Of a stretch of DNA of 64,000 bases, positions 12,392 through 52,739 are shown one piece after another (positions within the stretch are counted from its first letter, which is position 1; the number at the start of each line of letters is the position of its first letter). Position numbers and translations under genes: made by a program. Under the pieces are notes generated by a model. The model searched no databases. It was not told where the DNA came from and was given only the letters and a program-made list of their open reading frames with translations. This stretch comes from Ministeria vibrans ATCC 50519 (taxonomy: Eukaryota; Protista; Filasterea): contig CALSCP010001345.1 in the NCBI GenBank assembly GCA_943704425.1, positions 74,567-138,566 on the forward strand, given 5' to 3'.

Positions 12392-12583
12392 CAGAATGTT
12401 GAAAAGAAATGAATCATAATATTTTTTATTTTATTTGATCACAAACAATACGCGAACAGAAACCACTCAGAACCACACTTCAAATCAACAGAAACATCTA
12501 GATGAAGCGGAGACAAGTTGAGCCATGGCCAGACGAGCGAAAATAAAATGTATATTATATCATTATATTTATATAAAAGAAGT

Positions 12584-15572
12584 TTATTTGAGGAAGAGGA
12601 GCGATACAAACCCGGATTGGTCGGGTGGAGACACACCCACGATGACGTCGACGTGACTGTCGTCGTTAACAAAGCCGGCAAAGGCAATGCTGGTGCCAAA
12701 GGCGAGTTCGGCGTCTGGAGAGGGGGGTGATGCGCCAGGACCCGATTCAGTGAGCGATTGGATGGCGCGTATGGAGCCATCAAAGTTGAGAAAGCAGAGG
12801 TGTGCATGGCCCACACTCGACGAGTCTGACACATTCGATGTGGCCAGCAGCAAGTCTGGGATACCGTCCTGGTCAACATCACGACCACCTCCTAGTGCAT
12901 ACTGCGACATTGTGTCCGAGACAATCTCGGTTTCGCCCAAAGCGAATCCATCAGCATCGAGGAACACCACAAAGACGCCTGTGTCAGTGGCTACCGCAAT
13001 GTCGCTCGTGGTGTCCCCATTCACATCGCCGAGGGACGTCAAGGCGCTGCCAAAATGCCCTCCGTCGACTAGCAGGCCACGGAAGCCGCCCTCCACCGAC
13101 GAGAGCCAGCCTGTGAGCGTAAACGCATTGGTGTCGGTCAGTTTCATCAGGGCAAGCGCGCCTCGATCTGCACCGCCCGCGTCACGTCCCGGCGCACCCA
13201 CCACAAAGAGTCGATCGCTGCCTAGGGAAGCAACGGACGCACCAAAGTGGTCGTCGACTTGCAACACACTCGAGAGGGTGTGGGAACGCGCAACAACTGT
13301 AACGGTGGTACCATGCCAGCCTCGCTCCAGCTCCACCAGGTACACCTGGCCATACTCAAAGGCACGCGGTGCGCCCACGATCAGTCGTACACGCTCAGAA
13401 GTGGTCTCTAGTACGGTCAAAGCCGCTCCAAACCACGCTGATAACGATGGAACTCCAAGCACGGCCTGCGACGGCACGACGGAGATGTCGCGCTTGACTC
13501 GACCGTCATGACGCAGATAGAGCACATAGAGACCCCCCGTGCCAGACGTCTGGCCCTTCTCGCCAACCACAACATCATCAATCCCGTCCCCATCCAGGTC
13601 ACCCACGCTCACCACAGCAGAGCCCGTGAGGTCGGCGGCGAGCAGCGGGCGGGAGAATCCACCGGACGCGAGACTTTGCCGTCGCTCCTCCTCCATCGAC
13701 ACATTCGCATGTGTGGCATCCCACTTCAACTGCACAACAATAATAGCGCCTGCATTGTCTCCAACCTGCGACCATCCGGGCGTGCCCACAGCCACACGCG
13801 CGTTCACTCCCGACTGCCAATCAATTCCCATCAGACCCTGTCCAAAGCGACGCGATCCAGTCACATCCGAAACCAGTCCACTGCTCAGTGTCCCCTCGAT
13901 GAGATGCCCACTCTTGACCATTCCACTCTGGAACAGCAGCAAAATGTAGATGGAGCCTCGCTCGCTCGCAGCGCCGGGAACACCAACAACCAAGTCGACC
14001 ACGCCATCTCCTACAGCGAATAATAAAAAAAAACCCCCCCCCGCATGAGTACAAACAAAAATACACTCGTATAGACATGTACTCACCGTTGAGGTCACCA
14101 ATGGTCGCAATGGAGGCACCAAATTCGTCTGATGCTGAGATTGACTGAGGGAGAATGGTGTTGGAGCGAACGACGGTGCCATCGCGGTTAAATGTGCGAT
14201 GGTAAACTACATTGTCACCCGGTGAGCCCATGTAGACGTCGGTGAAGAGACCTAGGTTCTGCAGGTCGCCTGCGATACACACGCTCGAGCCAAAACGACT
14301 CGCGCTAGACTGACCGAGAGCGAGTGTGACCGAGTTGCGACTGCGGTCCACCGTCCCGTTTGCGTGCATATACACCAGATGGATCTTACCCGAGCCAATG
14401 TTGGGCTCGCCAATGAACAGATCAACCACACCGTCGCCGTCGATGTCGCCGACAGCAAGAGCACTGCCGAATTCCGTGTCAACCGAGATGAAGAGCTGTT
14501 CGTAGTCGATGAACGTTGAGGTGTACAGTTGTCCATCATGAGAGAGAGTGGACGTGTAGACAAATCCAATGGAGTGGCTGGTGCCCGACTCGGGTGACGG
14601 CACACCAACCATGAGGTCGGGGATACCGTCTTCATTGATGTCGCCCAGAAGAGCCAGGGCATAGCCATACTGTGAGTCGACGCGTGTGCGCACACTTTTG
14701 ATCAAACTCGTCTCACGGACAGAGCCATCGTCGCGCATGAATAGGATCATAATGGCACCCATGCTGCTGGACACGTCGTTGTGGAATGGACAGCCGACAG
14801 CCCACTCATCAATGCCGTCGCCGTCAACGTCGCCTGCCTTGATAATGGACCAGCCTAGTTTGCGCTGGGCAACTTCGTTGAAGTCGCGCGTCTCCTCGCC
14901 AATCCAGACTCCTCCGACCACCGTTCCATTTCCCCCGACAATAGTCCGTGTACAATTACTGCCGTCGCCGGAGAAGCCAAGCTCGCAGGCGCACGAGTAC
15001 TGGCCGGGGCCTTGGTAGAGACACAGCGAATGCGCACTCGCACTACAATTGTGTGTGCCGTCGACACACTTGTTGATGGCCGTACACGTAAAGCCACTAC
15101 CGCGGTATCCACTGTCGCATGAACATACAGCCGCACCCGAAGCGAGCGTTGAGCAGATAGCGTTGGGGGAGCAACGTGAGCATGTGCCTTAAAAAAAAAT
15201 TACATTGCGGTTTTGTGGTTCAGTTTCACAGTATATATATATATATAAAAACTGACCGACGTTGGATGGAGGGGTGGAAGTGGATGAAGATGAGAGGGCT
15301 TGCTCGAGCGCAACGACGCGAGAGTGGACGTCGATGCTGGAGTTGGCGAGAAAGAGCGGCGACGCGACGCGAACGTGTCCGCCGGCCGCGGGGTCAATGC
15401 GAAGCTCGCCATTGTCCATGCTGGCACTAAGAGGGGCGGGGGTGGAGGGGGGTGGCGGTAGAAGGGATTAAGGGGGGGGAGAGGGGCGGTAGAAGGGGTG
15501 GAAAGGGTACATGGAGGCATCTTGCGATGACACGGTGCCAATGCACAAAACGAGGCAGAGAAGAAGACTCAT
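12584..15572 (-). CDS. Secreted protein: signal peptide + cubilin-N-like module + 2 EGF domains + ~12 FG-GAP (integrin-alpha-type) repeats, no TM segment
   Basis: Exons 15572-15511, 15426-15257, 15187-14087 and 14010-12584. Signal MSLLLCLVLCIGTVSS. EGF motifs CSCDSGYRGSGFTC and CACELGFSGDGSNC. Repeated FG.S/A...GD.DGDG..D..VG.P. Ends VSLLFLK*. Confidence 0.9.
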
Positions 15573-15807
15573 TGCGACACGAGTAGGGTGATGCAGGCGC
15601 CCGCCTTGTATTGATGCCTGTTGGCGCTTGTATCAGAAGGAAACAAGTTAAAAGTAAAATTATTGGAAATTTCAGTCAAAACTCAAAAGTGAAAGGAAGT
15701 GGTATAAAACGCAGGGGTAATAATTATGCTATGTTTGCACCAATAACGCCATAGACTTATTAGACTGATTCCAAAAAGATGTTTGCTTATTATTATCATT
15801 GCTATTA

Positions 15808-16616
15808 TTATGAAGTTGAAGTTACAGGGCTCTTGGACTTGTTGGAAGGGAGCACACCGTGTTCTTCGAGATGGGCAATGGCGTCATAGGAGCGCTGGAC
15901 GCGGGCAAGAGCAAGTTGGGCGCGAACTCGTAAGGGATCGCATTGGGCATACGAGCGAATGAGGTCGGGCAAAGAGGTGTCTTGGGCGCGCTGGAGACGC
16001 GACTCGTGTTCATGACTGAGCATCTGCTGGGTGAACCGATCGCCTTCGGTGGGGACGGTGAGATGAGGGATGAGAGAGAGATCGGGTGCGGGAANNNNNN
16101 NNNGTCGGGGTGGAGACGACGAGGGGTGGGGGTGGGGGTGGTTGCGAGGAGGAGGACGGAGGCGCATGATGGGGTTTGTGCTGTTGCGACGTCTGCTGCT
16201 GTGGCGAAGGGTAGTGCTGAGGAGGGAACGACGGAGGGGTGTGGTAGCCGGGTGGCGCACTGTGTGGCGGGGGGGTGGACGGAGGAGGCGGCGCAGGAGC
16301 GGCAGGAGGAGGGCCGTTAGAAAGACGCCGTTCGTCCCAGCGCGATTGCGGCTGCTGCTGATGATGCGGGGGATGCGAGCGGTGCTGATGGTGTCGAGGA
16401 GGCGGGGTACTGTGTGAAGAGTGTCGCTCATCGCGCGACGACGCGTATGTGCTGTATGAGTCTGAGTTGTGTCGTCTACACACAAATCACACAAAATCAC
16501 ACAACTGAAAATGTTTCTTTTCTTTTTTTTTACGGCGGAGGTGATCTAGATCTTCTGCGCGATTGGTGGTACTGTTGAGACTGGTGGCCATGTGGGGAAG
16601 GTGAGTATCGTCGCAT
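15808..16616 (-). CDS. Pro/Gln/His-rich low-complexity protein with a short helical C-terminus; interrupted by an N-gap
   Basis: ATG 16616 (MRRYSPSPHGHQ...RSRSPP). The intron GTAAAA..GTAG joins to RHNSDSYSTY.... The frame change falls at the N-gap near 16095-16103. Confidence 0.55.
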
Positions 16617-16806
16617 CGTGATGAGAGGGATATTCCAATAATAATATTAATTATTATTATTATTATTTTTATTATTTTGATTTTTGTCTTTTGAATAGTA
16701 ATCAGTTATCAGTCAGCACTTAACTATCTATCTTTGATCACGACTGACCTCGTTCCTTCTGTGTTTCCCGAGTAACCGGGCTCCCCCTCTCCCCCCGCCC
16801 CCTCTC

Positions 16807-18478
16807 ATGTCGGTCGCGGCCGCCAAGGTGCGCATTGTGCAAAGATCACAGAGAGAGATTGTCATTGTGTGTCTAATTATGTGTCTGTCTCTCTCTCTCT
16901 CTCATTCTCTCACATTCTCTCTCTCTCCCTCTCTCTCTCTCCTCTTCCTCCCTCAGACGGAACTCAGCCTCAAGTGTTCCTATGGAAAGGAGAACCGGTA
17001 CGTCTTTCTCTTTGTTCTTTCTGTCGTTTTGTGTATCTCTTTGTGACGATTCTTTTTTTTTTTTTTTTAACTAACAATCTCTCAATTTCGCACAGGAGAT
17101 TCCACTTTCCCCGCGCTGCATTGACGCATCGGCTGCTCCTGGAGAAGCTGTCGGACCAGTATGGGTTCAATGTGTCTATTAGTTACGTAAACGATGAGGT
17201 CAGTGCAAAAACATATATAAAAAACGAAATATTTCGCTGTCGCTTTTTGTTGTTTTCGCTTTGCTCTCTCGCGTCTTGCGTCCTTTTGCGCGTCTGTTGC
17301 TTCCCACGTGTGCCTTGTCGGTGCACGCTCCCTTCCCGCGGGGTCGCTGTGGTCTCATGGGCCTGTGTCGTGTAGGGCGCGCGAGTGGAGCTGCAGTCGC
17401 AGTACGAAATGGACATGGCTCTCATCACATACGACCGGACGGCGACGGAGGCCGCCGAGAAGGCCGACAGGAGCGAGCCGCCGCCCCTACGCATTCGTGT
17501 GGAGAAGAGCACGGCCCAGGCGGCGCTGCTTCCGGTCAGCGTTGCGACCGACGTCAAACGCGTCTCGTCGTTTGTGGCCGAAGAGAAGACCCCTCCGCCC
17601 AGTCCCGTGCGCCAGACACACCACGCACGTGCCTTCAGCGACGGCGGTCTTGGCTTTGTATCCAATACGAGTTCGCTCGACTCGAGCATGGGGCACTACA
17701 CCGATGTGCTCTCCATGGGCTCGACGACAGGTCCGTCGCTCATCGGCTCACGCAGTCAGGGGGGCGTCGCCATGCCTGTCACTGACGGCTTCCATGCCGA
17801 CTCGGACGACGATGGTAACGCTTCGTCGCCCGAACCAGGGTGCCTGCCGGCTTCTCGTCGGCCCCTCTCGACGGGCGCTCTCTCCTCGTCCACCGAAAGT
17901 CCTTCAACGCCTCTGAGCCCCTCCTTAAACACCCCCAATGGATCAAGGCAACAACAGCTACAGACGACAAACGCATCGCAGCATTACAGTCGCATCCTCT
18001 CACCTGTCTCCCTCTCGCCCGTTCGCTCACACTTTGTCGCCGAGCACAGTCTCCCATACCAACGCGACTTCCCTAACATGTACCATCGGCACCCGCCCGC
18101 CCCTACCAGCCCCCAACATTATCAACACCAACAACAGACCACAACCACCTACGCCGACTACGCCGTTCCCAACGGCGCTGTGCCCATCATTAAGAAGCCT
18201 GTGCTCTCCTTCCGTCACTCCACCCCCGCCGACGACGACCGCCGTCGCGGCTTTGTCGTCCGCCCTGCACACCACCAGAATGCTGGCCCTCCTCAACAGA
18301 GCTCGACAGCGACAGCCACTGCAAATACACCTGGCGTGGGTGGTGGGGTGTTCTCAGGTGCTCCTCATCCCGAACTCGTCACCTCACCCGTCTTCCTCGC
18401 CTCCTCCGTCAGCTCCACCTCCGCCTCCACTCCCACCACCGCCTTCCCTTCCCCACCCCCCACCCAACAACCACAACC

Positions 18479-18509
<31 letters not shown>

Positions 18510-19935
18510 CCTCAGTCGATTGCAGCGTCATCACCACCAAAAGACCCTACACCTCCCACTCGAGCAAAAACCATCTCTACCGCTCCCTCTTCTCCATTCC
18601 CCTCCAACGCTCCGTCCGTCACGACATCCCCTCCCTCCACTCAGCGCTCCTCCTTTAACAGCAACACCAGTAGCTTTGTGTCGGCGGCCGTTGCCTCAGG
18701 CACTGCCGTCCCTCTTGGCGAATTTAGAAAACGCTCGCGAACCTGTCCCGACTCGGTGCTCAGCAAAGTACAAAAACGCCCGACACGCGACGAACTGGAT
18801 CGAGTGGGTCAGCCCAAACGGTGGAAGTTGGGTGCGCTGTTGGGTCAGGGAGGTTTTGGCAAAGTGTACGTGTGCTATGATCTCGATCGCGGGACTCAGT
18901 TGGCCGTCAAGCAAGTAAGATTATCTGACTGCATGCATGTGTGTGTTTATCTACTTTGTTTCTCTCTTGATTTTTTTCTTTTTTATCACTCTTGTTTCTC
19001 TCTATCTCTCTCTCTCTCTCTCTGTCACACACACACTTTGCTTTTTTCATCTCCCTCGTCTCTTTCTCTCTCTTTTCCTACGTCTCGTTTTTGAACAAAA
19101 TTCATCTTATTGCTCTTTTTCCAGGTTGATTTGCAAAACATCAATGGATCTCACAGTGCCAAACACGACCGAGAAATGCAGAATCTCGAGGAAGAAATTG
19201 AGGTAATGAAGGCTCTCAAACACGAACATATAGTGCACTATTACGGCACTGAGCGCACCGAGTCGGCTTTGTCCATCTTTATGGAATTTGTGTCGGGAAA
19301 CTCAATTGCGTATCGACTCAAAGCGGTAAGTGTGGATTATTTTTTAACAATAATTATATTATTATATTAATTGATGAATCATTCATAATAATTGTTGTTG
19401 GTAATAATTGTAGTGCGGAGCATTCAGTGAGTCTGTGACGCGCAACTACACTCGACAGTTGATTGAAGCACTGATCTATCTGCATGAGAATCGGGTGGTG
19501 CATCGGGATATCAAGGGAGCGAACATTCTGGTGGAGAAGACGGGACTGGTCAAACTGGCGGACTTTGGAGCGTCCAAGCGACTTCTGTCGATCATCCAGG
19601 ACAGTAATTTTCTCAAGTCGCATGTGGGAACGCCATACTGGATGGCACCTGAGGTGGTCAATGGCGAAGGGCACGGGCGCAAAAGCGATGTGTGGTCTCT
19701 GGCTGCGACCGTTCTTGAAATGCTCACGGGCCGTCCGCCCTTTGGCCACCTGGAACCTATGGCCGCCATCTTTCGCATTGGCTCCACGACCACTCCACCC
19801 CCTATTCCCTCCGATATTTCCCCCACCGCTCGCTCCTTTATGCTCTCGTGCTTTGTGCGTGCTCCGACCGAACGTCCCGGCCCTGAGCTGCTCATTCAGC
19901 ACGCCTTTGTGCCCGATTTTTGTCCCTTCCATTGA
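16807..19935 (+). CDS. MAP3K of the MEKK2/MEKK3 type (N-terminal PB1, C-terminal STE11-family kinase)
   Basis: Spliced PB1: LSLKCSYGKENRRFHFPR...ISYVNDE...LQSQYEMDMAL...LRIRV. Kinase motifs WKLGALLGQGGFGKVYVCYD, AVKQV, HRDIKGANIL, DFG and GTPYWMAPEV. Confidence 0.93.
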
Positions 19936-20768
19936 TTCCCCTGCGACTCTGTCTGTCTCTTTTTTTTCTTATTTGCGAGCTTCTCTCTTTGAGGTCTGTC
20001 GTATTATTTTTTTTTGTCTTGTACTTGTGCGTTTGTATGAGAAGATAATAATATAGAGTATCATAATAATTTCATTGCTTGAATTGCCAGGAATTCAACA
20101 TTACTCTCCCACCGTGATAGCGGCGACTTTGTAAGCCTCTGCCAGTCACTGACAGCATGACACTTCCCGCTTGACCCTTGTTTCTTTTCCCTTTTCATTT
20201 ACTCACAACTGTGCCCAAGGCAGTTCCATTAGCAGAGTACCCGTTCCGGCTCGCTCGAGTTCGTAGTGAGTCAGTCAGTCCGAGAAAGACCCCTTTCAGT
20301 GCGCGAATCTATGCACTGGGGAACGTAGGCAACTGGTCGTTGCCAAGAATAGCGCGCATCGAGGGCGGCCGTCTGAGCCAAATGTGGAATTGGAGTTGTA
20401 ACTCCCAAGGGTGAACCCAGGTCAGAAGTAAAGTGAGTGCGCACTATATATAGACACGTCCCGCTCACTGTGCGACTGCAGATTGCACCACTCCGTGTTG
20501 TTCGTGAGGCACATTCGTTGACTCGCGCTGCCCCTGCGAACGCCAGTTGAGCATTGTGACTCGGCACGAAGGGGGTCTCAGAGCCTGCAGTAAAAACCAA
20601 TGGTACAGCGTAACTACAGGTTCGATGTTGGCGGTAGCCATCTTGTCAATTGACACTTGAGTAGTTGTTAAAGAGTTGTTTTTCCTACATTTTACAGGCA
20701 CATTCACACACACGCACACATCTCTCTCGTTCTCTGAGTCACAAAAAATGAACACACACAGCATCAGC

Positions 20769-21448
20769 CTATTGAGGTGCTGCCGACTTGCTCATGGTGT
20801 CCGTGGCGATCTGACGCATTGTGACAGACACCTCCTTGGCCATGTCCTCGAGCCCGTGTCCCGCAAAGATATCCATAGAGATCATGGCGGCGGGGTCAAC
20901 GAACGACACCACGACTTGGTCGTCTTCGCTGTACACCGACACGCGACAGGGCAACAGTGAACTGACCGTCATGGTTTGGGAGAGCACAGCGCTCGCCTAA
21001 GGAAGACACAAACGCATTAAGACACACACACACACACACATATATAAATATATTACATATATATTCACACACACACTCCCTCACTCACTCACACAGTGCG
21101 CGAGTATATATATCTACGCACCTTCTTGGGGTTACAGACCTGGTAGACGATAAGGTCCTTCTCGAAAGGCTCGCCCTGTGAGAGAGAGTTGAGTGGTCAG
21201 AACTCGCACTTATCACAAGTTGTACAACAGAAAACCGAACGTTTCGTCTTTCTCACCTTAGAAATCAATGTCGACTTGATATCGACCTTGCCAACGACAC
21301 CAAACTTGTTCTCGACAATGGCCTGCTCCAGGTTGGCGCAGACAGTCGCAAAGTCAGCGGCGCTGTAACGACAGAGTGAATATGAATAACATGTCAAGCG
21401 ACTGAAGCGCAGTCCGTACCAGCGCATTTCAACGAGTCCGGAAGCCAT
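20769..21448 (-). CDS. DUF302 (COG3439) domain protein
   Basis: Four exons give ...LEQAIVENKFGVVGKVDIKSTLISK|GEPFEKDLIVYQVCNPKK|ASAVL...LLPCRVSVY. CNP and LPCR are the DUF302 signature motifs. Confidence 0.85.
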
Positions 21449-21925
21449 GCTTGGTATGGTGTATGATCGGGTGGGTGGGTTCGAATGAATTAAACTAAGT
21501 GATAGAACCAAGTCGGATTTCAGAATTTGTCTTTCAATTGGAAAATGTCGGCAAACGAATAACCGCCGATCTGTGTCTATTCATGCAGCACACGCTGTAA
21601 GTTATAATAAGCAATAATTATGCATGAAGCATCAAAGCATGAATAGTCATGATGACTGATCACTGATATGTCAAAGGAGAATGTACATTATTATGAAAAT
21701 CACATGAAAATGATATGTAAAGAAACTCCACACACTCTTTTGAGGGGCTTCTGAGGCGAGTCTATTCATTATACACTCAATAGTCAATATAGTATGTGGC
21801 GGAAGCATTCAGCAATCCACAATCAGCAATAATTCAGCATTGACTGTATTATTTGTACTACTCTTACTGATCGATGAGCAAACTAACTAAACTTTTATAG
21901 AAATATTATATTATTTGTATTGCTC

Positions 21926-23484
21926 ATGCTTCGATTTTTGCTGCTAGTGGCCACCTTGGTTGTTACAATCCAAGGAGTGGACGAGGCAGAGATGTACGCC
22001 CTCTGATTGTATTTTTTTATTGTTTTTATTGNNNNNNNNNNNNNNATTAATAATAATAATAATAGATCCTCACAAGATGGAAATCTGGTGATCTCGCCGA
22101 GCAGCAGTGGCGCTGTGCATGTCATGGGGGATGCTCTGTACGTCAATGGCTCTCGCGCTGTGACCAATGCGTCGTGGACTGAGCGCACTGCATCGCTTTT
22201 TGACCGCATTGCGCGACTGGAGTGCTCTGCAAGCACCAGTGGCTGCTCTGCCTCGCCCGCAACAGCCACGGCCGTCTCGACTGCCACGGCAACCCCGACG
22301 CCCACACCCGCCCCCTCGGCAGACCCCGACCCGCAACCGCGCTCAACGCCCTTCATCGCCACGTTCGACACGACTCGGTCAAGCAACCGCGCCACCAACG
22401 AGACGCAGCTCAACCTGCCCCTGCAGTCGTCGGGAACGTACTCTTTCGTCGTCGATTGGGGCGACTCCTCCCAATCAGACACAATCACGTCCTATGACGA
22501 TCCGGCCGCGACGCACAACTACGCCCAGCCCGGTACAGAACATACACGAGTGGACACCACCACCAGGCCTCGCCCCACACCGACTTCACTGATCTCTACT
22601 CTACTGTACTAGGGACGTATACCGTCACAATTCAGGGCCAACTCGACGGCTGGCGCTACAACAACCAAGTGGACTGTGTCAAACTCATCTCGGTCCTCCA
22701 GTGGGGCTCCCTGCGTCCCATGAGCTCAAACGGTAACTATTTCTCGGGCGCAGTGAACATGGACGTGCTCGCAACGGACACACTCGATCTGTCGCTCACT
22801 ACGACGCTCGCTGGTGCGTTCACTCGAACCAAAATTAGCTCCACAGGCAACTTCAATGCGTGGGACGTCGCACATATTGTCGACTTCTCTTTCTGCTTCA
22901 GCTTCTGCACCTCGTTCAACCAGCCCCTCGACCAGTGGGACACGTCGAGTGCCATCAACATGCGCAACATGTTCTACACCGCGTCCATCTTCAACCAGCC
23001 CGTCGAAACGTGGGACGTCTCGCAGGTCACCGACATGTCGGCCATGTTTCAACTGGCGCGTCGCTTTAACCAGTCACTCGTGCAATGGGACACGGGCAAG
23101 GTCGAAATCATTGATGTCATGTTCCGGCAGTGCACTGACTTCAACGGCAACGTGAGCACGTGGGATACGTCTAGCATGCGTCAAATGGCATTTGCCTTCA
23201 ACGAGTGCCCTTCCTTCAACCGCGACCTGTCCGCCTGGATCACCACTAGTGTCACCTCCATGTCATACATGTTTAAAGATGCCACATCCTTCAACCAGGA
23301 CATTAGCGCCTGGGACACGTCGTCCACCACGCAAATGACCAACATGTTCAACAATGCCCGTGCATTCAACCAAGATTTGTCAAGCTGGTGCGTGGCCCAC
23401 ATTGCGTCACAGCCCGCCTCGTTTGACGCGAGTGCGTCGGCTTGGTCCCTCAGCAGACCGCTTTGGGGTGTGCCGTGTGTCTAA
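21926..23484 (+). CDS. Secreted protein: signal peptide + cubilin-N-like module + PT linker + PKD-like domain + DUF285 (BspA-like) repeats
   Basis: Exons 21926-21993, 22066-22532 and 22613-23484. FVVDWGD...THNYAQPGTYTVTI is PKD-like. About nine 25-aa repeats of type FNQPLDQWDTSSAINMRNMF. Ends FNQDLSSWCV..I.SQP..F. Confidence 0.92.
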
Positions 23485-23685
23485 CAAAGAATCTCCCACG
23501 CATTCGCATGGCACACTTGGATATTTTATATTAATAATAATAATAATAATGATTAAAATAATAATAATTATTCATATTTTTTTTGACATGACTGTACTGA
23601 TTTAAGAAGTCGTGGCGAATTGAGATGTGAGTTTGGCAGTGTCTTTTGTGTGAGAAAGAGTGTGTGTGTGTGCATGTGTGTGGAC

Positions 23686-26137
23686 TTAAGTGGTAGGATC
23701 GTGTTTGGCGAGAACCTCGGGAGGGAAGGCATAGCCGCCGTTGCCATGCCACAGGCTGATAGGCTCGGGGCAGGACCAGTAAGCTTCCTTACGCGACTCA
23801 TAGCCATGCTCATACCACCATGTGCACAGCTGATAGTCACAAATGTACAGCACAGGAAAAGAAAATAATAGGGTGGGTGAGAGAGTGTCAGTGAGTGTAC
23901 AGATATATAAAAAGTGAAAGAAGTGACATAAGCAAAAATCGACAGTTGACAAAGAGTAAACTGCGTCAGTTGCATGAGTTTGATTAAACAACATCTCAGA
24001 CAGGGAGAGATACACAATTGAAAGTGAGATTGAAAAAACTCAAACTAATAAAACCAATCGAAAACGCACACCCTACTCAAAACAAACTCTCCAAAAAAAA
24101 AGGTAATACAAAAGATAAATAGTTCTTAATGTTATTCTTACCTGTCTGTTCCACTGACACGGAAGAACATAAAACAAATGTTCCTAACACACACAAACAA
24201 AAGAATATCAGAATTGTTTTGAAACGACTCGTTTCATTGATCTATTACGTGTTCAAATGACATTAGAGTGTATAAATCCTGATCGCCCAAATGTCCCTTG
24301 AATGAGTATTTCTCAGCCAACTAAAAGAAAATGAAAAGATTAATCAATATCACCATTGTGTTTCAAAGATGAAAAAGAGTGATTGACAGTGAGTGAAACT
24401 GCTTGATTGAAAATGACACTTTACCTGACCCAAATAGGGTCCGTCAATGACCGATTTGTAGAGCTCTGTTGTGCGCATTCTGTCCAACCGCATAAGCATC
24501 ACTCCACTATTGAATCCTGCACAATAGATAATAGTTTTACAAGAGCTCAATTTAACTCTCTCGCGACTCAAGTCAGTGTGACCAAAGTGAGTGTCTGTCT
24601 GTGTCGTACCAGTCAGTCCGTCTGGAGGAGCTGCACCCACTCGCGTCACTTTGTTCTCACTGCGCCACTTCCACGTGTTATGGTAGTACACTAACATAAT
24701 AATAATAAGAATAATTAGAAAAATAATGAGGGAAAATAATAAAAATAATAAAAAGATGAGAAAAGTATAATCGGTGTAACCTTAATCACAAACAAGTACA
24801 TCCCCAAAACAACTTACACACTACACACTAAACCTCACAACGCGACATGAGCCACCCGCCTATATTAACCCTAACCCTCACCTGGCTGCTGATCGTGCGC
24901 AATAGCCATCAGCGCACTCTCTCCCATCTTCCCATAGTACTCCACCAAATGCCGCATATCATCGGCAACCACAATATCACTATCCATTGCAACCAAATGC
25001 GTCAACTCTGGAAAAATCTTATGCGCAACCTAAATGACACCAAAACATTCAATCACATGACAATATTACTCTCCCCCATTTGACGTACGGGAGCCAAAAA
25101 GAAAATGGCCTGAGCATAATAAGCACCGCTTCCCGACGAGAAGTGACCGCGCATTCCCTCAATGTGGGGCATCACTTTGTCGGCCATTTCGTTGTCCATA
25201 TAGGTTGAAAGCTAAACACACACACGCAGAGAAGAAGAAAAATAGTGAAAGTAAGTCTGTTGTGTGCATTGCGATGGATTTTTACCTGGATTGATTTTGA
25301 AGGGTATGATTTGGGGTTGATTGCAGCTTGAACAAGAAATTCGCTGTTCTTGTCGGTGACGACGTGGAAGTGGATGGGAATGGTTGTGTAGCGCAGGATG
25401 GTGCGGATGCAACGGGCAAATTGCTCTTTGCGCTTGAAGTTGTTGTGCGCCTTGGTGAGAATCATCAGCAGGTCCATTTGCGATGGGATTGCCGATGGTC
25501 CACTCTCCTGTGTGTGGGAAAAAAAAAATTGTGTGATGAGGTTTTTTTGTGGGTGCACAAACAACAATGGCTTACTTTAGTGGACAGTTGGACGTGAGGA
25601 ATCGCAATCTGAGCTGCTTTTGGTGCTTGCGGTGGTGGTGGGGGCGGTGGGGGCGCAACCTTGACGGGNNNNNNNNNNGGGGGCGGTGGGGGCGGCGGTG
25701 GAGGGGCCGGCGGTGCGCGCACGGGGTCGTGAGGGCGCGTACCGGGCGAATGGCGCTGGCGCTCAAGCCTGCAAACACAGATAGTGCGTGTGTGAGAGTG
25801 TGAGGGCAATTTTAAGGCACTCGGAGAGCCCCCCAGGCCCCGCCCGCAGGCACGCCGATGGTGCAATGAGCAGTGCTAGCCACACAGGGAGAAGGACGCA
25901 CAGAAGCGATGTGCCGCAATGGCCAAACGACCAATCGATTTCAAAACGAAGAACAGAAAAAAAAAAAAAAAAAAAAAAAAAGAGCGCTTACTCTTGTTTG
26001 ACGACATGAGGAGAAACTGGGGGTGCAGGCATCGGGGGTGGGCCGTCGCCTTGATTCTCTGCCCACTGGCCGTACGCCAGAAAGCAAAAGATGAGAAAGA
26101 GAGCGACTTCACTGACGCGACGAAGAGTCACTCGCAT
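23686..26137 (-). CDS. XXYLT1: Xyloside xylosyltransferase 1 (GT8), type II membrane protein with a Pro-rich stem
   Basis: N-terminal anchor MRVTLRRVSEVALFLIFCFLAYG. Spliced catalytic motifs HFSSGSGAYY..AIFFL, DSD (DxD), QPVYYH..W.WR.EN..TRVG, GFNSGVML, KYSFKGHLGDQD, WNRQLCTWW and HGN closely match recalled human XXYLT1. Confidence 0.92.
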
Positions 26138-31100: not shown

Positions 31101-34100
31101 ACGCTGCTCTGCCTGTGACAGCAACTGCTCCAGCAACGCATGCGCCTCCGTCACACGTTCCACCACCACTTCTCGTAGCGCCCACTGCGCCATGCGCACC
31201 GCCAGCTGTTCACGCACCGTCTTAAGCGTCTCCGCATCGTCCATTGGCTGACCCATCGTCTCGCGCGCCCACTTTGCTTCTGCGTCGCACTCGCGCCGCA
31301 ACTGTCGCTCCCGCTCGCTCTCTGCTCGCTCTCGTTCAACCCGCTCTCGCAAAACCCGAATTGACGCACACAGCGATTGCACGCGTGCTCCTTCCGCCTG
31401 CACTGCCTCTGAACAGCCTTCGGCCACAATCGCGTCACGCTCGGCCATCTCTGCGCGCTCCACCAGCACACGCAGACACTCTTCGCCCCGCTCGTCAATC
31501 ATTCCGTTTGCCACCTGATCGTGCAACTCGTAGTAGTATCGCGTGAGAGTGTTCTCGTGTGCCCGCACGCGTGCCGACACTTCTCCTTCATGCTCGCGCG
31601 CACTCAGCTGTTCTCGATGAATTGCAATTTCGTGTCGCAGCGCAGCTACAGCCGCCTCTGCCTCGTTTCCTTGCACTCCATACTCCAACTCACCCAGTCG
31701 CGTCTCGAGCTCACTCGTCACCCGATCCAACTGCACCACTGCCCCTCCATTGCCCAGTTCCGCGTGCGGCGCCACAAGCAACTCCGCACGCGCATCCGAA
31801 AGCCACAATTGAAACTCCTGTGCCTCCGCGTCCATCACCTCCTCGGTCCGTCGCTCGTCAATACGATCCAGCTCTTCGTCGCACAATTTCTCCAGGTGCG
31901 TCCACGCATCCAACACGCGTCCCACAAGTTCATCGGCCGCCGCACTACCCACATGCGTTGCATCTGCTGGCTCCATCTTCTCCGTGTACGCTGCAACATA
32001 CCGTCGAATAGTTGCCAATGACGTGCCCTTGTGCGACAGAACGTACTCTACATGCTCAGCACGCGCCTGTAAGTCCCCATGCCCCGCCATCAGTGCCCCC
32101 TCCTGACTTTGCGTCCACTTCAGAACCCCTTCACACTCGTCACGCAGTCGCTCCCATCGCTGTCGCCCTTCCAGCCGTACCTCTATATCTCCCATTCTTC
32201 TCTTGACCGCCTCCAGTCGCGCACGCACCCGTCGCACGCGTGCGTCGTCCACCGCATCACGCTCCAGCTCGTCGCACGCAATCTCCGCCGCACGCATTTC
32301 GGTTGCGTACTCCTCACGATGCGCTCGCAATCGCAACTCGGTCGACTCCGTTGACGGGTCCGTCTCGTCCTCTTGCACATACCGCTCCAATCGTGCACTC
32401 ATCGACAGTTCCAATTGCTCGAAACGACCATTGACAATCACACGTCGCTGGCATACACGCAATCGCTCCACAGCACTCTCCCACGCCTTTCGTGTGCACA
32501 CACGTTGCGCGCGTAGTTGTTCCATCAAAGCCACACTCGTCCCGCCTGATCCGCCCTCTTCTCCTTCAACCACTTGCACTGTATTCGCCTGGAACAGCTC
32601 CGTGGCCTGTCTCTCAAGCGACCCAATGACACGCGCGTGCGCCTCAAGGTCACGTGCCATCTCGACGACACTCTCCTCGTCGTTGACAGCACGCTCGCTG
32701 TCGCGTTCCATTGTCTCCCGCAGCTCCAAAAACGCATCCAGTACAGTTTCCACTTGCTTGTGCAGTGCCAGTCGCTCTCGTTCACACATAATGTCCGTCG
32801 CAAACTGAGCTAAACGACCACGCACCGCCCGATCGCGTCCCAACAGTTGCACATGCAGTGGCTCAGGCAGTGCCTGCAGTGCGACATCTACTTGTCGCTC
32901 CAGCTCACGATGCACACGCTCAATGCTCGCCAGTGGCTCGGTACCCGCTCCTTGCACCGCAGCGTGTGTCAACACGTGTGGCACACTTGCATCGACCGTC
33001 ATGAGCTGCTCAAGACACTGACTAACCACGTGTCGCTGCCGACGCAGCTCTCGACGATCTCGGTTCTGCTCCCGCACCTGCGCAAGTCCCGTCTCAACCA
33101 GCGCCAGACGGGCACTTAGCACCTCTACATCCACCGCTGACGTACCCTCATTTGTACACAATGCACTCAACTGCTCGCGTGTCATCGCCGCATCCACTAG
33201 GCTATTCTCAACCTCTGCCTCTTCTTCTTCTTCCTCCTCCTCCTCCTCCTCCTCTTCGTCTTGCCCATTTTCACCTTCGAGTTCGGATATAAGTGCCCCA
33301 TTAGTGTGCACCAGACGATTCAGAGTCTCTTCAAGCAGACCCACTCGCTCTGCAAGCGACTCCAGTACTTCCATAGCTTCCACATGCGCCACGACCCGCT
33401 CCACTTCTTTCTTGACACACTCCAGCGATTCCGTCACGCGCACTCGTTCGGCGCGCACAAACGCATCGTCACTCAACGTCTCGATTGACGACAGCTTGCT
33501 CTCCACCTCCACTGCGACTGTGCGCGCCCGAGCAACCCCATCGCGATCCACTTCCTGCAGACAAGCTCGCATGCGCGCCACTCCATGACTCGCCTCCTCC
33601 AGTACTTGTTTCTGCCGTCGCACCACCTGAGCTCGCTCCATCTGTGCCTGAGTTTCCAACAGTGTTGCTTCCAACTGTACCACACTCTGCTCGAGATCTT
33701 CGTACGCATAGCTCACTTGCTGAAGTGGAGTGTCCCGCCACGCAGAGGGCACATACATCATGGCGGCCGCTTCCATCGCCTCCAGATCACTGCGACGCCC
33801 GTGCACGGTGCTCACCAACATGGTCACTCGGTCCACCACGGCGAGACCTTCCTCCTCCGACGTGTCCACCACTATCCCCAACTGCACGACGCAGGACGCC
33901 ACGGTGACTCGCTGTGCCTCACACCACTCGCGCAGCCTCTCTAGCTCACACAGCCACTCCACGTGTGACCGCACTTGCGCGACAGCACTCACTGCCGCCC
34001 GTATCACTCTTTCCAGCAACTGCCATGCCTCGTGTAGCCGCACCATCCGCTCCATTGTAACCGTGACATCCCTGGTGGTCGCAGGGGCATCATTCGCTAA

Positions 34101-51409: not shown

Positions 51410-52739
51410 TTATTTTTGACTCAGAGCACTGTTGAACAAACTCTCACTCGTGGTCTGTTGCTGGTAACCGGCTAATCGCAACATGGCGGGCAGAGTTTCG
51501 TCGAGTTTCTTTACGAAACCGTAGGGTTTGTAGTTTTGCTCTGTGACATCGCTTTCCTGTAGCGGTTCGGTGTCGAGCGTTGTCGACGGCGTCTCGGAAG
51601 TGGAGGGATTCTGCTGCGCGGAGCAGTTGCGAATATTATTCCTCATGCTGCTCATCCGGCGCTCGTCCATGTCGTCGAAGATGTCGACCGTATTCTCGTC
51701 AGCCAAAACGGCTTCCCATATGGTTCCCCTTTTGTAGCTCTCGTACAAATCGTTCTTAAGGAGTTCGTCTTGCGTTTCGCTGGTGAGCGTGTCGCTTGAC
51801 CCAGCATGCACACGTGGTGTGGTTGCAGTAGTTGTGTTGGTGGTGGTGGTTGAGGATGCGGGGGAGGGTGACGGGTCATAGGTAGAAGTGCTCTCCAAGT
51901 CGACGCGCACCCGCACCGCACGTGTGTACTCTTCGCATTCCGAGTCGTCATCATCGTCCTGTGCACAGAATGAATAAACAAAAGAATGATTCGGTGTTTT
52001 TTCACTTTTTTGCTTTAAATATACTCATAGCAGGGTCTTATATAAGTCTTATATTTGGTTTTTGCTCTATATTCTGTAACTTTGTACCTCGCGAGCTCGT
52101 TTGCAATTGACTGAGCGGTTCTGTGGGTCGATTCCATCGCTGCGATTGGGCTTGCCAATGGGACTAGTCAATGACGCTGCCTCGGATGGAGCACCTGTGA
52201 ATGAAGCGCCCAAATATAAAAATAAATAAAAGAGTGGAAATTATCATAGATAAAAACAAGATGAAAATACGTGGTGATAATTACTCCATACCTTGGACTG
52301 ACATGTATGGTGGTGATGTTGAAGCGGGAGCAAACTTCGTCGTCGGCGTGTTATCTCCAGGGAAGATAACAATCGACGTCTCTCGGGTGTTGAGGAGCTT
52401 GAAGGAGAATTTGTAAAGCGCCCCTGCAGCTGTCTTCTGCATCACTTTCAAAACTTTCTCGTTTGCTTCAACCAAGATTGCACTCTTGCTCTTGTTTTCA
52501 CCGAGAAGTTTTTCGATGCCCTCCGCCGGCTCGTGACCGTAACGGGAAAGGTGTTCTCGGTTCAGACGATGATTACCAGGCGACAGGCGGTCCAACACGG
52601 CGTTTTTAGGGAGACGTTGGCGAGTTTCTTTCAGCTCGCTAATTATCCCTTCGAGAAATGCGATGGTGGTGCACTCGATCAAAGGACTCCCACGCTTCAT
52701 TTGGACAAAGACTGTTTTGATCTCTTTAGTCTCTGGCAT
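51410..52739 (-). CDS. Orphan protein (~370 aa, three exons; start may lie further upstream)
   Basis: ORF 52739-52292 splices (phase 1) to GAPSEAASL...KRARE, then (phase 0) to DDDDDSECEEY..VRVRVDLES...SQK*. Phases are consistent. No family recognised. Confidence 0.6.

Follow-up and report, generated by a model that had tools for sequence, protein, structure and literature searches.

The 64,000-nucleotide stretch of the Ministeria vibrans ATCC 50519 genome analysed here (contig CALSCP010001345.1, positions 74,567 to 138,566; hereafter the window) contains two genes on opposite strands, gene A (minus) and gene B (plus), whose products start with a signal peptide followed by a short N-terminal module, here called the leader, and then carry different downstream domains, here called the cargo. 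An original prediction made from the sequence of the window held that the two leaders are one and the same trimerising cassette, related to the N-terminus of animal cubilin and joined to its cargo by exon shuffling. Our analyses indicate that genes A and B belong to a single lineage-expanded family of secreted proteins, with about 50 genes in this genome, which is defined by a common N-terminal leader that probably trimerises.

The features of both genes are collected in Table 1. Searches with the gene models used one exon at a time, and the hydrophobic cores of the signal peptides of A, B and their paralogs were judged by inspection. In gene A, the donor of exon 1 (AT|GTACC) fits the donor pattern of the leader family, and exon 2 (15426-15257, minus strand) opens with the T that completes the split ATT codon, followed by 56 residues. 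The module of gene A carries a 12-residue deletion, which shortens the helix, and the Cys pair is absent from it. Its cargo matches EGF_3 (3.1e-13) and FG-GAP (3.5e-15 and 4.5e-15) in Pfam. As predicted, a Ser/Thr/Pro linker follows the module in both genes and neither protein has a transmembrane segment, the terminal open reading frames (ORFs) of A, which ends at 12584, and of B being without a transmembrane-like end.

Table 1 Features of genes A and B in the window (positions are those of the window)
Feature	Position	Strand	Description
Gene A exon 1	15511..15572	-	ATG at 15572; 20-amino-acid signal peptide-like sequence ending D-A-S, plus AT of the split Ile codon
Gene A intron 1	15427..15510	-	84 nucleotides, GT..AG, phase 2 inside the Ile codon
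Gene A leader module	15294..15426	-	Beta part and shortened helix; divergent family member
Gene A Ser/Thr/Pro linker	15257..15293	-	Exon 2 ends in phase 1
Gene A cargo	12584..15187	-	Two EGF_3-type domains, then FG-GAP repeats across at least two further exons
Gene B exon 1	21926..21993	+	ATG at 21926; 22-amino-acid signal peptide-like sequence ending E-A-E, plus AT of the split Ile codon
Gene B intron 1	21994..22065	+	GT..AG, phase 2; holds the assembly gap 22032-22045
Gene B leader module	22066..22246	+	Beta part, helix, two Cys after the helix
Gene B Ser/Thr/Pro/Ala linker and first part of PKD-like domain	22247..22532	+	Exon 2 ends in phase 1
Gene B exon 3	22613..23484	+	End of PKD-like domain and DUF285 repeats; stop at 23484

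The sequencing data bear out both introns modelled in gene B. An RNA-type contig from run X5 covers 21933-21993 and resumes at 22066, skipping 72 nucleotides with GT..AG ends, and a 1372-nucleotide RNA-type contig from run X2 joins the two sides of intron 2 (22532/22613). The run of Ns at 22032-22045 lies wholly inside intron 1 (donor at 21994, acceptor at 22065) and is bridged by a 2080-nucleotide DNA contig from run X18, which is unbroken over 21500-23468 and places 19 letters behind 22031. As the gap is short and intronic, the reading frame of gene B is untouched. Exon 2 (22066-22532, plus strand) opens with the A that completes the ATA codon, and exon 3 lies under an RNA-type contig spanning 22612-23517. 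The DUF285 repeats of gene B are matched in Pfam at 5.2e-64; the stretch preceding them, here called PKD-like, gave no PKD match in Pfam, whereas paralogs do score PKD.

The peptides and coordinates from which the original prediction aligned the two N-termini behind the signal peptide proved exact. Nevertheless, a direct comparison of module A with module B by BLASTP is not significant (E 93), so the alignment by eye of the two modules is insufficient alone, and gene A is absent from the list returned by the genome-wide profile search described below. Both results would fit a chance resemblance between low-complexity N-termini rich in Gly, Ser and Val, with the shared intron position a coincidence. 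Profiles of the leader family (A1 and A2) argue otherwise, since both modules match the profile of the paralogs. Against alignment A1, which consists of 24 paralogs with A and B excluded, hhalign gave a probability of 94% (E 1e-7) for module A and of 98.6% (E 8e-16) for module B. HMMER scored module B at 56.4 bits and module A at 22.6 bits, or 27.0 bits with a larger profile likewise built without A, and none of 2000 shuffled versions of module A reached the real score, the highest being 11.3 bits. A six-frame scan of the window found only B (1.3e-20) and A (1.1e-6), the next match standing at 0.11, and in a search of the 29.7-Mb genome module A led to one bridging paralog at E 0.03. Gene A also shares with the family the place directly after the signal peptide, the phase and codon of the intron, and the predicted order of strands and helix. 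A chance resemblance is refuted as far as sequence statistics reach, and we give it hardly any credence. Judged from these comparisons, A and B are members of one leader family, linked through paralogs. Pfam has no family for module A and returned nothing relevant for module B.

The whole genome was searched with module B, which alone found 25 places, and with the family profile, which found 68 places at E<=1, about 47 of them at E<1e-3. The further members that the original prediction had expected a profile to reveal are therefore present, as at least 47 paralogs; 53 of the profile places were read, and 52 members were aligned for the intron comparison given below. The module, about 45-55 amino acids long in A and B, stands directly behind a hydrophobic signal-peptide stretch in every readable member. 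Its consensus comprises a start of the form acidic-x-x-[I/V]-aromatic-N, a beta unit (D-G-N-[I/L]-V-L-x-P-A, an N-x-S turn, and S-V-x-V-x-G-x-L-x-V-x-G), and a coil of three to four heptads (L-x-x-L-E-x-R-V-x-x-L-E) that is closed in many members by C-x-C. Among the 43 full-length modules, the helix is followed by a C-x(1-2)-C motif in 19 and by some Cys in 36, and an N-x-S/T sequon occurs in the beta part of 34 of the 52 aligned members. The cargo differs widely, in line with the predicted use of the module in front of interchangeable heads: the 47 downstream ORFs carry EGF (19), DUF285 (7), Receptor-L (5), PKD (5), TSP1 (2), HYR (1) and SBBP propeller (1) domains. The leader corresponds to no Pfam family, and no description of it was found in the literature searched; a literature search on DUF285 gave nothing useful. 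Close matches of the leader come only from ENA and Logan assemblies, and a search for homologous proteins with a full paralog restricted to its leader region returned nothing.

In a small sub-group, composed of L059 (G000:C2215:19391-21892), L060 and L051, the coil is very short or absent and the module ends V-A-T-E-N-x-V-D-x-K-I, followed by C-x-C and by Receptor-L or leucine-rich repeat-like cargo. Two members of this sub-group stand in tandem on contig C2215, 2.3 kb apart.

The position of intron 1, which was predicted to be in phase 2 inside the same Ile codon of both genes (15511/15426 in A and 21993/22066 in B), is shared beyond the window, and the junction in B is joined by the RNA-type contig described above. 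A GT..AG phase-2 intron in the same codon is found in 18 of the 52 aligned members, namely A, B and 16 others, where it splits a codon for Ile (16), Val (1) or Phe (1) located 3-4 residues before D-x-G. The upstream exon of the intron-bearing members encodes a Met and a hydrophobic stretch, and in the intron-less members the frame is uninterrupted, the corresponding residue being I or V. In a tree of the leaders, the intron-bearing members are scattered, requiring 11 changes compared with a mean of 15 after shuffling, and A and B are not sisters. The simplest reading is that the ancestral leader already had this phase-2 intron, which about one-third of the members would have kept and the others lost, in many separate events.

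Exon shuffling, by which the original prediction explained the different cargo, is not borne out by the module borders. The conserved start of the module is itself interrupted by the shared phase-2 intron. At the 3' border, gene A has an intron of phase 1, gene B has none ahead of its PKD-like domain, and most paralogs run straight into their cargo. With unequal border phases and an intron inside its start, the exon of the module does not form a cassette that is symmetric and self-contained. The heads have instead probably diversified by gene duplication and change of the downstream domains.

The homotrimer of the original prediction was recovered in silico for the B module. Three-copy predictions gave an interaction prediction score from aligned errors (ipSAE) of 0.78-0.79 in three runs, while the best of three controls reached 0.02. 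The partner predicted local distance difference test (pLDDT) value was 84, and the contacts agreed to at least 93% between runs. The predicted contacts involve residues 4-37, with register shifts from chain to chain, and helix positions at heptad spacing (37, 40, 44, 47-48, 51 and 54-55), a pattern expected of a three-stranded coiled coil that is capped by intertwined beta strands. In the AlphaFold2 monomer models, short strands precede a single helix in both B (pLDDT 87.6, helix 34-55) and A (pLDDT 79.7, four short strands, then helix 33-46). Searched against the PDB, the family profile matched trimeric coiled coils and reovirus sigma-1.

Distant relatives of the leader were sought among 1.84 billion representative proteins, of which 89 matched at E<1e-3. 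The best matches are this organism's own genes; the remainder comprise a few eukaryote-type look-alikes and proteins carrying the beta motif in tandem. The best non-self matches among the 1.84 billion representatives are tandem-repeat proteins of the tail-fibre type, which are classified as tail fibre or virion structural proteins in PHROGs, one of them with a Peptidase_S74 domain. The repeat unit of these phage- or virus-like tail fibres (PHROG 15769, 1980 and related), x-N-G-D-I-x-L-x-P-N-G-x-G-x-V-x-V-x-G-x-L, aligns with the beta part of the leader. Phage tail fibres of the repeat type are trimers. In the fibres the units form a tandem array, in some cases with a C-terminal Peptidase_S74 chaperone, whereas the leader has a single unit and no chaperone domain, is fused to a coiled coil, and stands behind a eukaryotic signal peptide with a spliceosomal intron. 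Look-alikes from the ESM Atlas, regarded as leads, include Peptidase S74, YadA stalk, gp37 trimer and T4 gp36 clusters.

A few look-alikes of the family exist in other marine eukaryote data. Three proteins from other assemblies (P0061, P0062 and P0080) are GC-rich and of eukaryote type and have a signal peptide, one beta unit and an Ala/Arg-rich coiled coil; this shared layout implies that the leader is not confined to this organism.

Two further groups of oligomeric proteins resemble the leader in layout. The stalks of trimeric autotransporter adhesins (YadA, SadA and AtaA) have an intertwined trimeric transition from beta structure to coiled coil and are weak look-alikes of the leader; these stalks are of bacterial origin, with a C-terminal membrane barrel as anchor, and their matches to the leader are not significant (Z 2.6-2.8). 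Thrombospondin and COMP have coiled coils with flanking Cys, and tenascin has an assembly domain. Like the leader, such oligomerisation domains of the animal matrix generally combine a short N-terminal coiled coil and Cys with subsequent EGF repeats and variable heads, but they have no sequence relation to it, no intertwined beta cap, and an oligomer number that ranges from 3 to 6.

In the interpretation that we favour, each chain would consist of a signal peptide, a short conserved start, one fibre-type beta unit and a coiled coil usually closed by Cys-x-Cys, in that order. Three chains would intertwine through the beta unit and zip up through the coiled coil, and the Cys pair would then lock them together by interchain disulfides. 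Thrombospondin and COMP serve as the analogy here: interchain disulfides are expected of Cys residues that directly follow the coil. The protein would be exported as a parallel trimer showing three copies of its cargo, whether EGF stalks, PKD-like and DUF285 domains, FG-GAP propellers, Receptor-L, TSP1 or HYR. Membership in the family, the place of the intron, both splice junctions of gene B and the variety of cargo are observed directly; beyond these observations, the leader probably trimerises, the disulfide lock probably forms, and the heads are probably displayed at the cell surface or outside the cell.

Several points weigh against this interpretation. The trimer itself is a prediction, made with a method calibrated on dimers: of 30 proteins with a solved structure of paired identical chains, 21 attained the mark, compared with 0 of 23 solved as single chains, counts that are only roughly valid for three copies as the calibration used two, and passes among eukaryotic proteins may stem from solved look-alikes that the model has memorised. 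In gene A, the absent Cys pair and the shorter helix may make oligomerisation weak or different in kind. Its junction at 15511/15426 is read from the sequence, the RNA support given above being that of gene B. The leader tree is poorly resolved (2 of 49 branches supported) and too weak to separate intron loss from repeated gain. Finally, the profile of the leader beta part aligned with 23 tail-fibre-type units at an hhalign probability of 97.1% (E 7.8e-11, 28 columns), a score that is inflated because the units were picked from the family's own hidden Markov model matches, and the 52 single modules had no match in PHROGs.

A different role for the leader would be that of a sorting signal or pro-peptide, serving a secretory organelle or the deposition of scales or a wall, or that of a small sugar-binding element. 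The leader would then be conserved because it is recognised by cellular machinery. Its invariable place directly behind the signal peptide and the frequent sequon in its beta part are consistent with such a role, as is the motif D-G-N-L-V-L-Y-P, which also occurs in bulb-type lectins, one of them, P0011 (B_lectin 1.6e-17), being among the distant matches of the leader. The likeness to lectins is limited to about 12 residues, however, and the modules have no B_lectin (PF01453) match in Pfam; moreover, the heptads, the paired Cys residues behind the helix and a homotrimer prediction far above its controls give the leader the look of an assembly domain. We consider a sorting or sugar-binding role very unlikely as the explanation of the family, although sorting would be compatible with trimerisation.

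The leader also invites comparison with cubilin, for which human residues 36-135 (PDB 6GJE) served as reference (Larsen et al. 2018, PMC6283879). The N-terminus of cubilin is composed of an intertwined beta-helix and a coiled coil, with EGF repeats next in line, and its trimeric beta-helix binds with the open end to beta-helix 1 of amnionless (PMC6283879). The leader could be a true, very divergent homolog of this region, whose trimer would dock end-to-end on an amnionless-like membrane protein, which would tether trimers that are soluble by themselves. The parts follow one another as in cubilin (PMC6283879): both regions stand at the mature N-terminus of a secreted, membrane-less protein, and the strands that intertwine three chains ahead of a trimeric coil in cubilin have a predicted counterpart in the leader. 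EGF repeats follow the N-terminal region in cubilin as they do in gene A and in 19 of the 47 paralogs. In a structural search of 48,161 PDB chains, independent of Foldseek, chain 6GJE_B ranked first and was the sole match spanning the whole B monomer model (root-mean-square deviation 4.8 Å over 58 aligned residues), but its Z of 3.3 is weak, far below the meaningful level and formally tied with helix-only matches at 2.8. Foldseek of the leader model against the PDB gave nothing below E 5. By sequence, the PDB was searched at E<=10 with phmmer and with two profiles, which listed coiled coils and chance matches and no cubilin, and none of the 89 best representatives is a cubilin-sized protein with an N-terminal match. 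In addition, the beta part fits phage-fibre repeats far better than anything animal.

For the partner of cubilin the outcome was marginal, and for its cargo negative. Across the whole genome, the amnionless profile PF14828 reached at best 20.2 bits, below the Pfam cut-off of 30.4, with a second match at 16.5 bits, and it had no match in the window. The best match (G000:C2362:41705-41911) covers profile positions 10-78, in the N-terminal region of the amnionless family, at E 0.004 with one TAA inside. The same contig bears two leader-family matches, at 33038-33106 (weak, E 0.06) and 52587-52721, about 10 kb from the PF14828 match, a neighbourhood that would suit homology with cubilin. CUB domains are absent from the cargo of the 47 paralog ORFs; the only ones in the genome (G000:C408:110773-115132, 51.2 and 27.1 bits) are in or next to a 2656-amino-acid open frame on contig C408, which has no leader-family match. 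The leader further differs from cubilin in its much shorter beta part and coil, in the Cys-x-Cys after the coil, in cargo that is never CUB, and in number, with about 50 paralogs in this genome compared with one or two cubilin genes in animals.

The relationship by descent that the original prediction proposed is thus left with a single weak structural match and no match by sequence or profile, and homology with cubilin appears unlikely to us. The separate membrane dock that it also predicted is hypothetical. As modelled, the leader may work like the cubilin N-terminus, which is a likeness of shape; membership of the cubilin family is not demonstrated. A broader, rather improbable proposal is that the leaders form the plug half of a two-part, cubam-like receptor system outside animals. 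About 50 trimeric heads would then dock through their open beta cap onto a few membrane proteins with amnionless-like tips and a signalling output, and this cubam-like architecture would be either ancestral to the animal one or convergent with it. The top-ranked papers on unicellular relatives of animals contain no mention of cubilin or amnionless.

If the leader trimerises, one small and readily spotted tag would predict the quaternary structure of about 50 adhesion and recognition proteins that a marine protist secretes. One beta unit of the fibre type with a coiled coil would then be reusable as a general display stalk, serving both eukaryotic (EGF, TSP1 and FG-GAP) and bacterial-type (PKD and DUF285) heads. 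The presence of one intron in one-third of the paralogs and its absence elsewhere provide a clean case for studying intron loss, and a plug-and-dock receptor of the cubilin-amnionless type outside animals becomes a testable question.

Several minor observations concern the sequence data over the window. Position 22442, in exon 2 of gene B, is G in runs X1 and X2 (labelled organism A) and T in the window and in DNA run X18 (labelled organism B). Words of 12500-22000 are present at 20-66% in several differently labelled organisms, which may be near-identical strains or the same cell in other cultures, and a seawater metatranscriptome contains part of the window. Downstream of gene B, the stretch 23521-23684 is a repeat at which the contigs of all four runs break. 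Beyond it, an RNA-type contig of run X5 skips 312 nucleotides at 23829-24142 with CT..AC ends, equivalent to GT..AG on the minus strand, which marks an intron of a minus-strand gene directly downstream of gene B.

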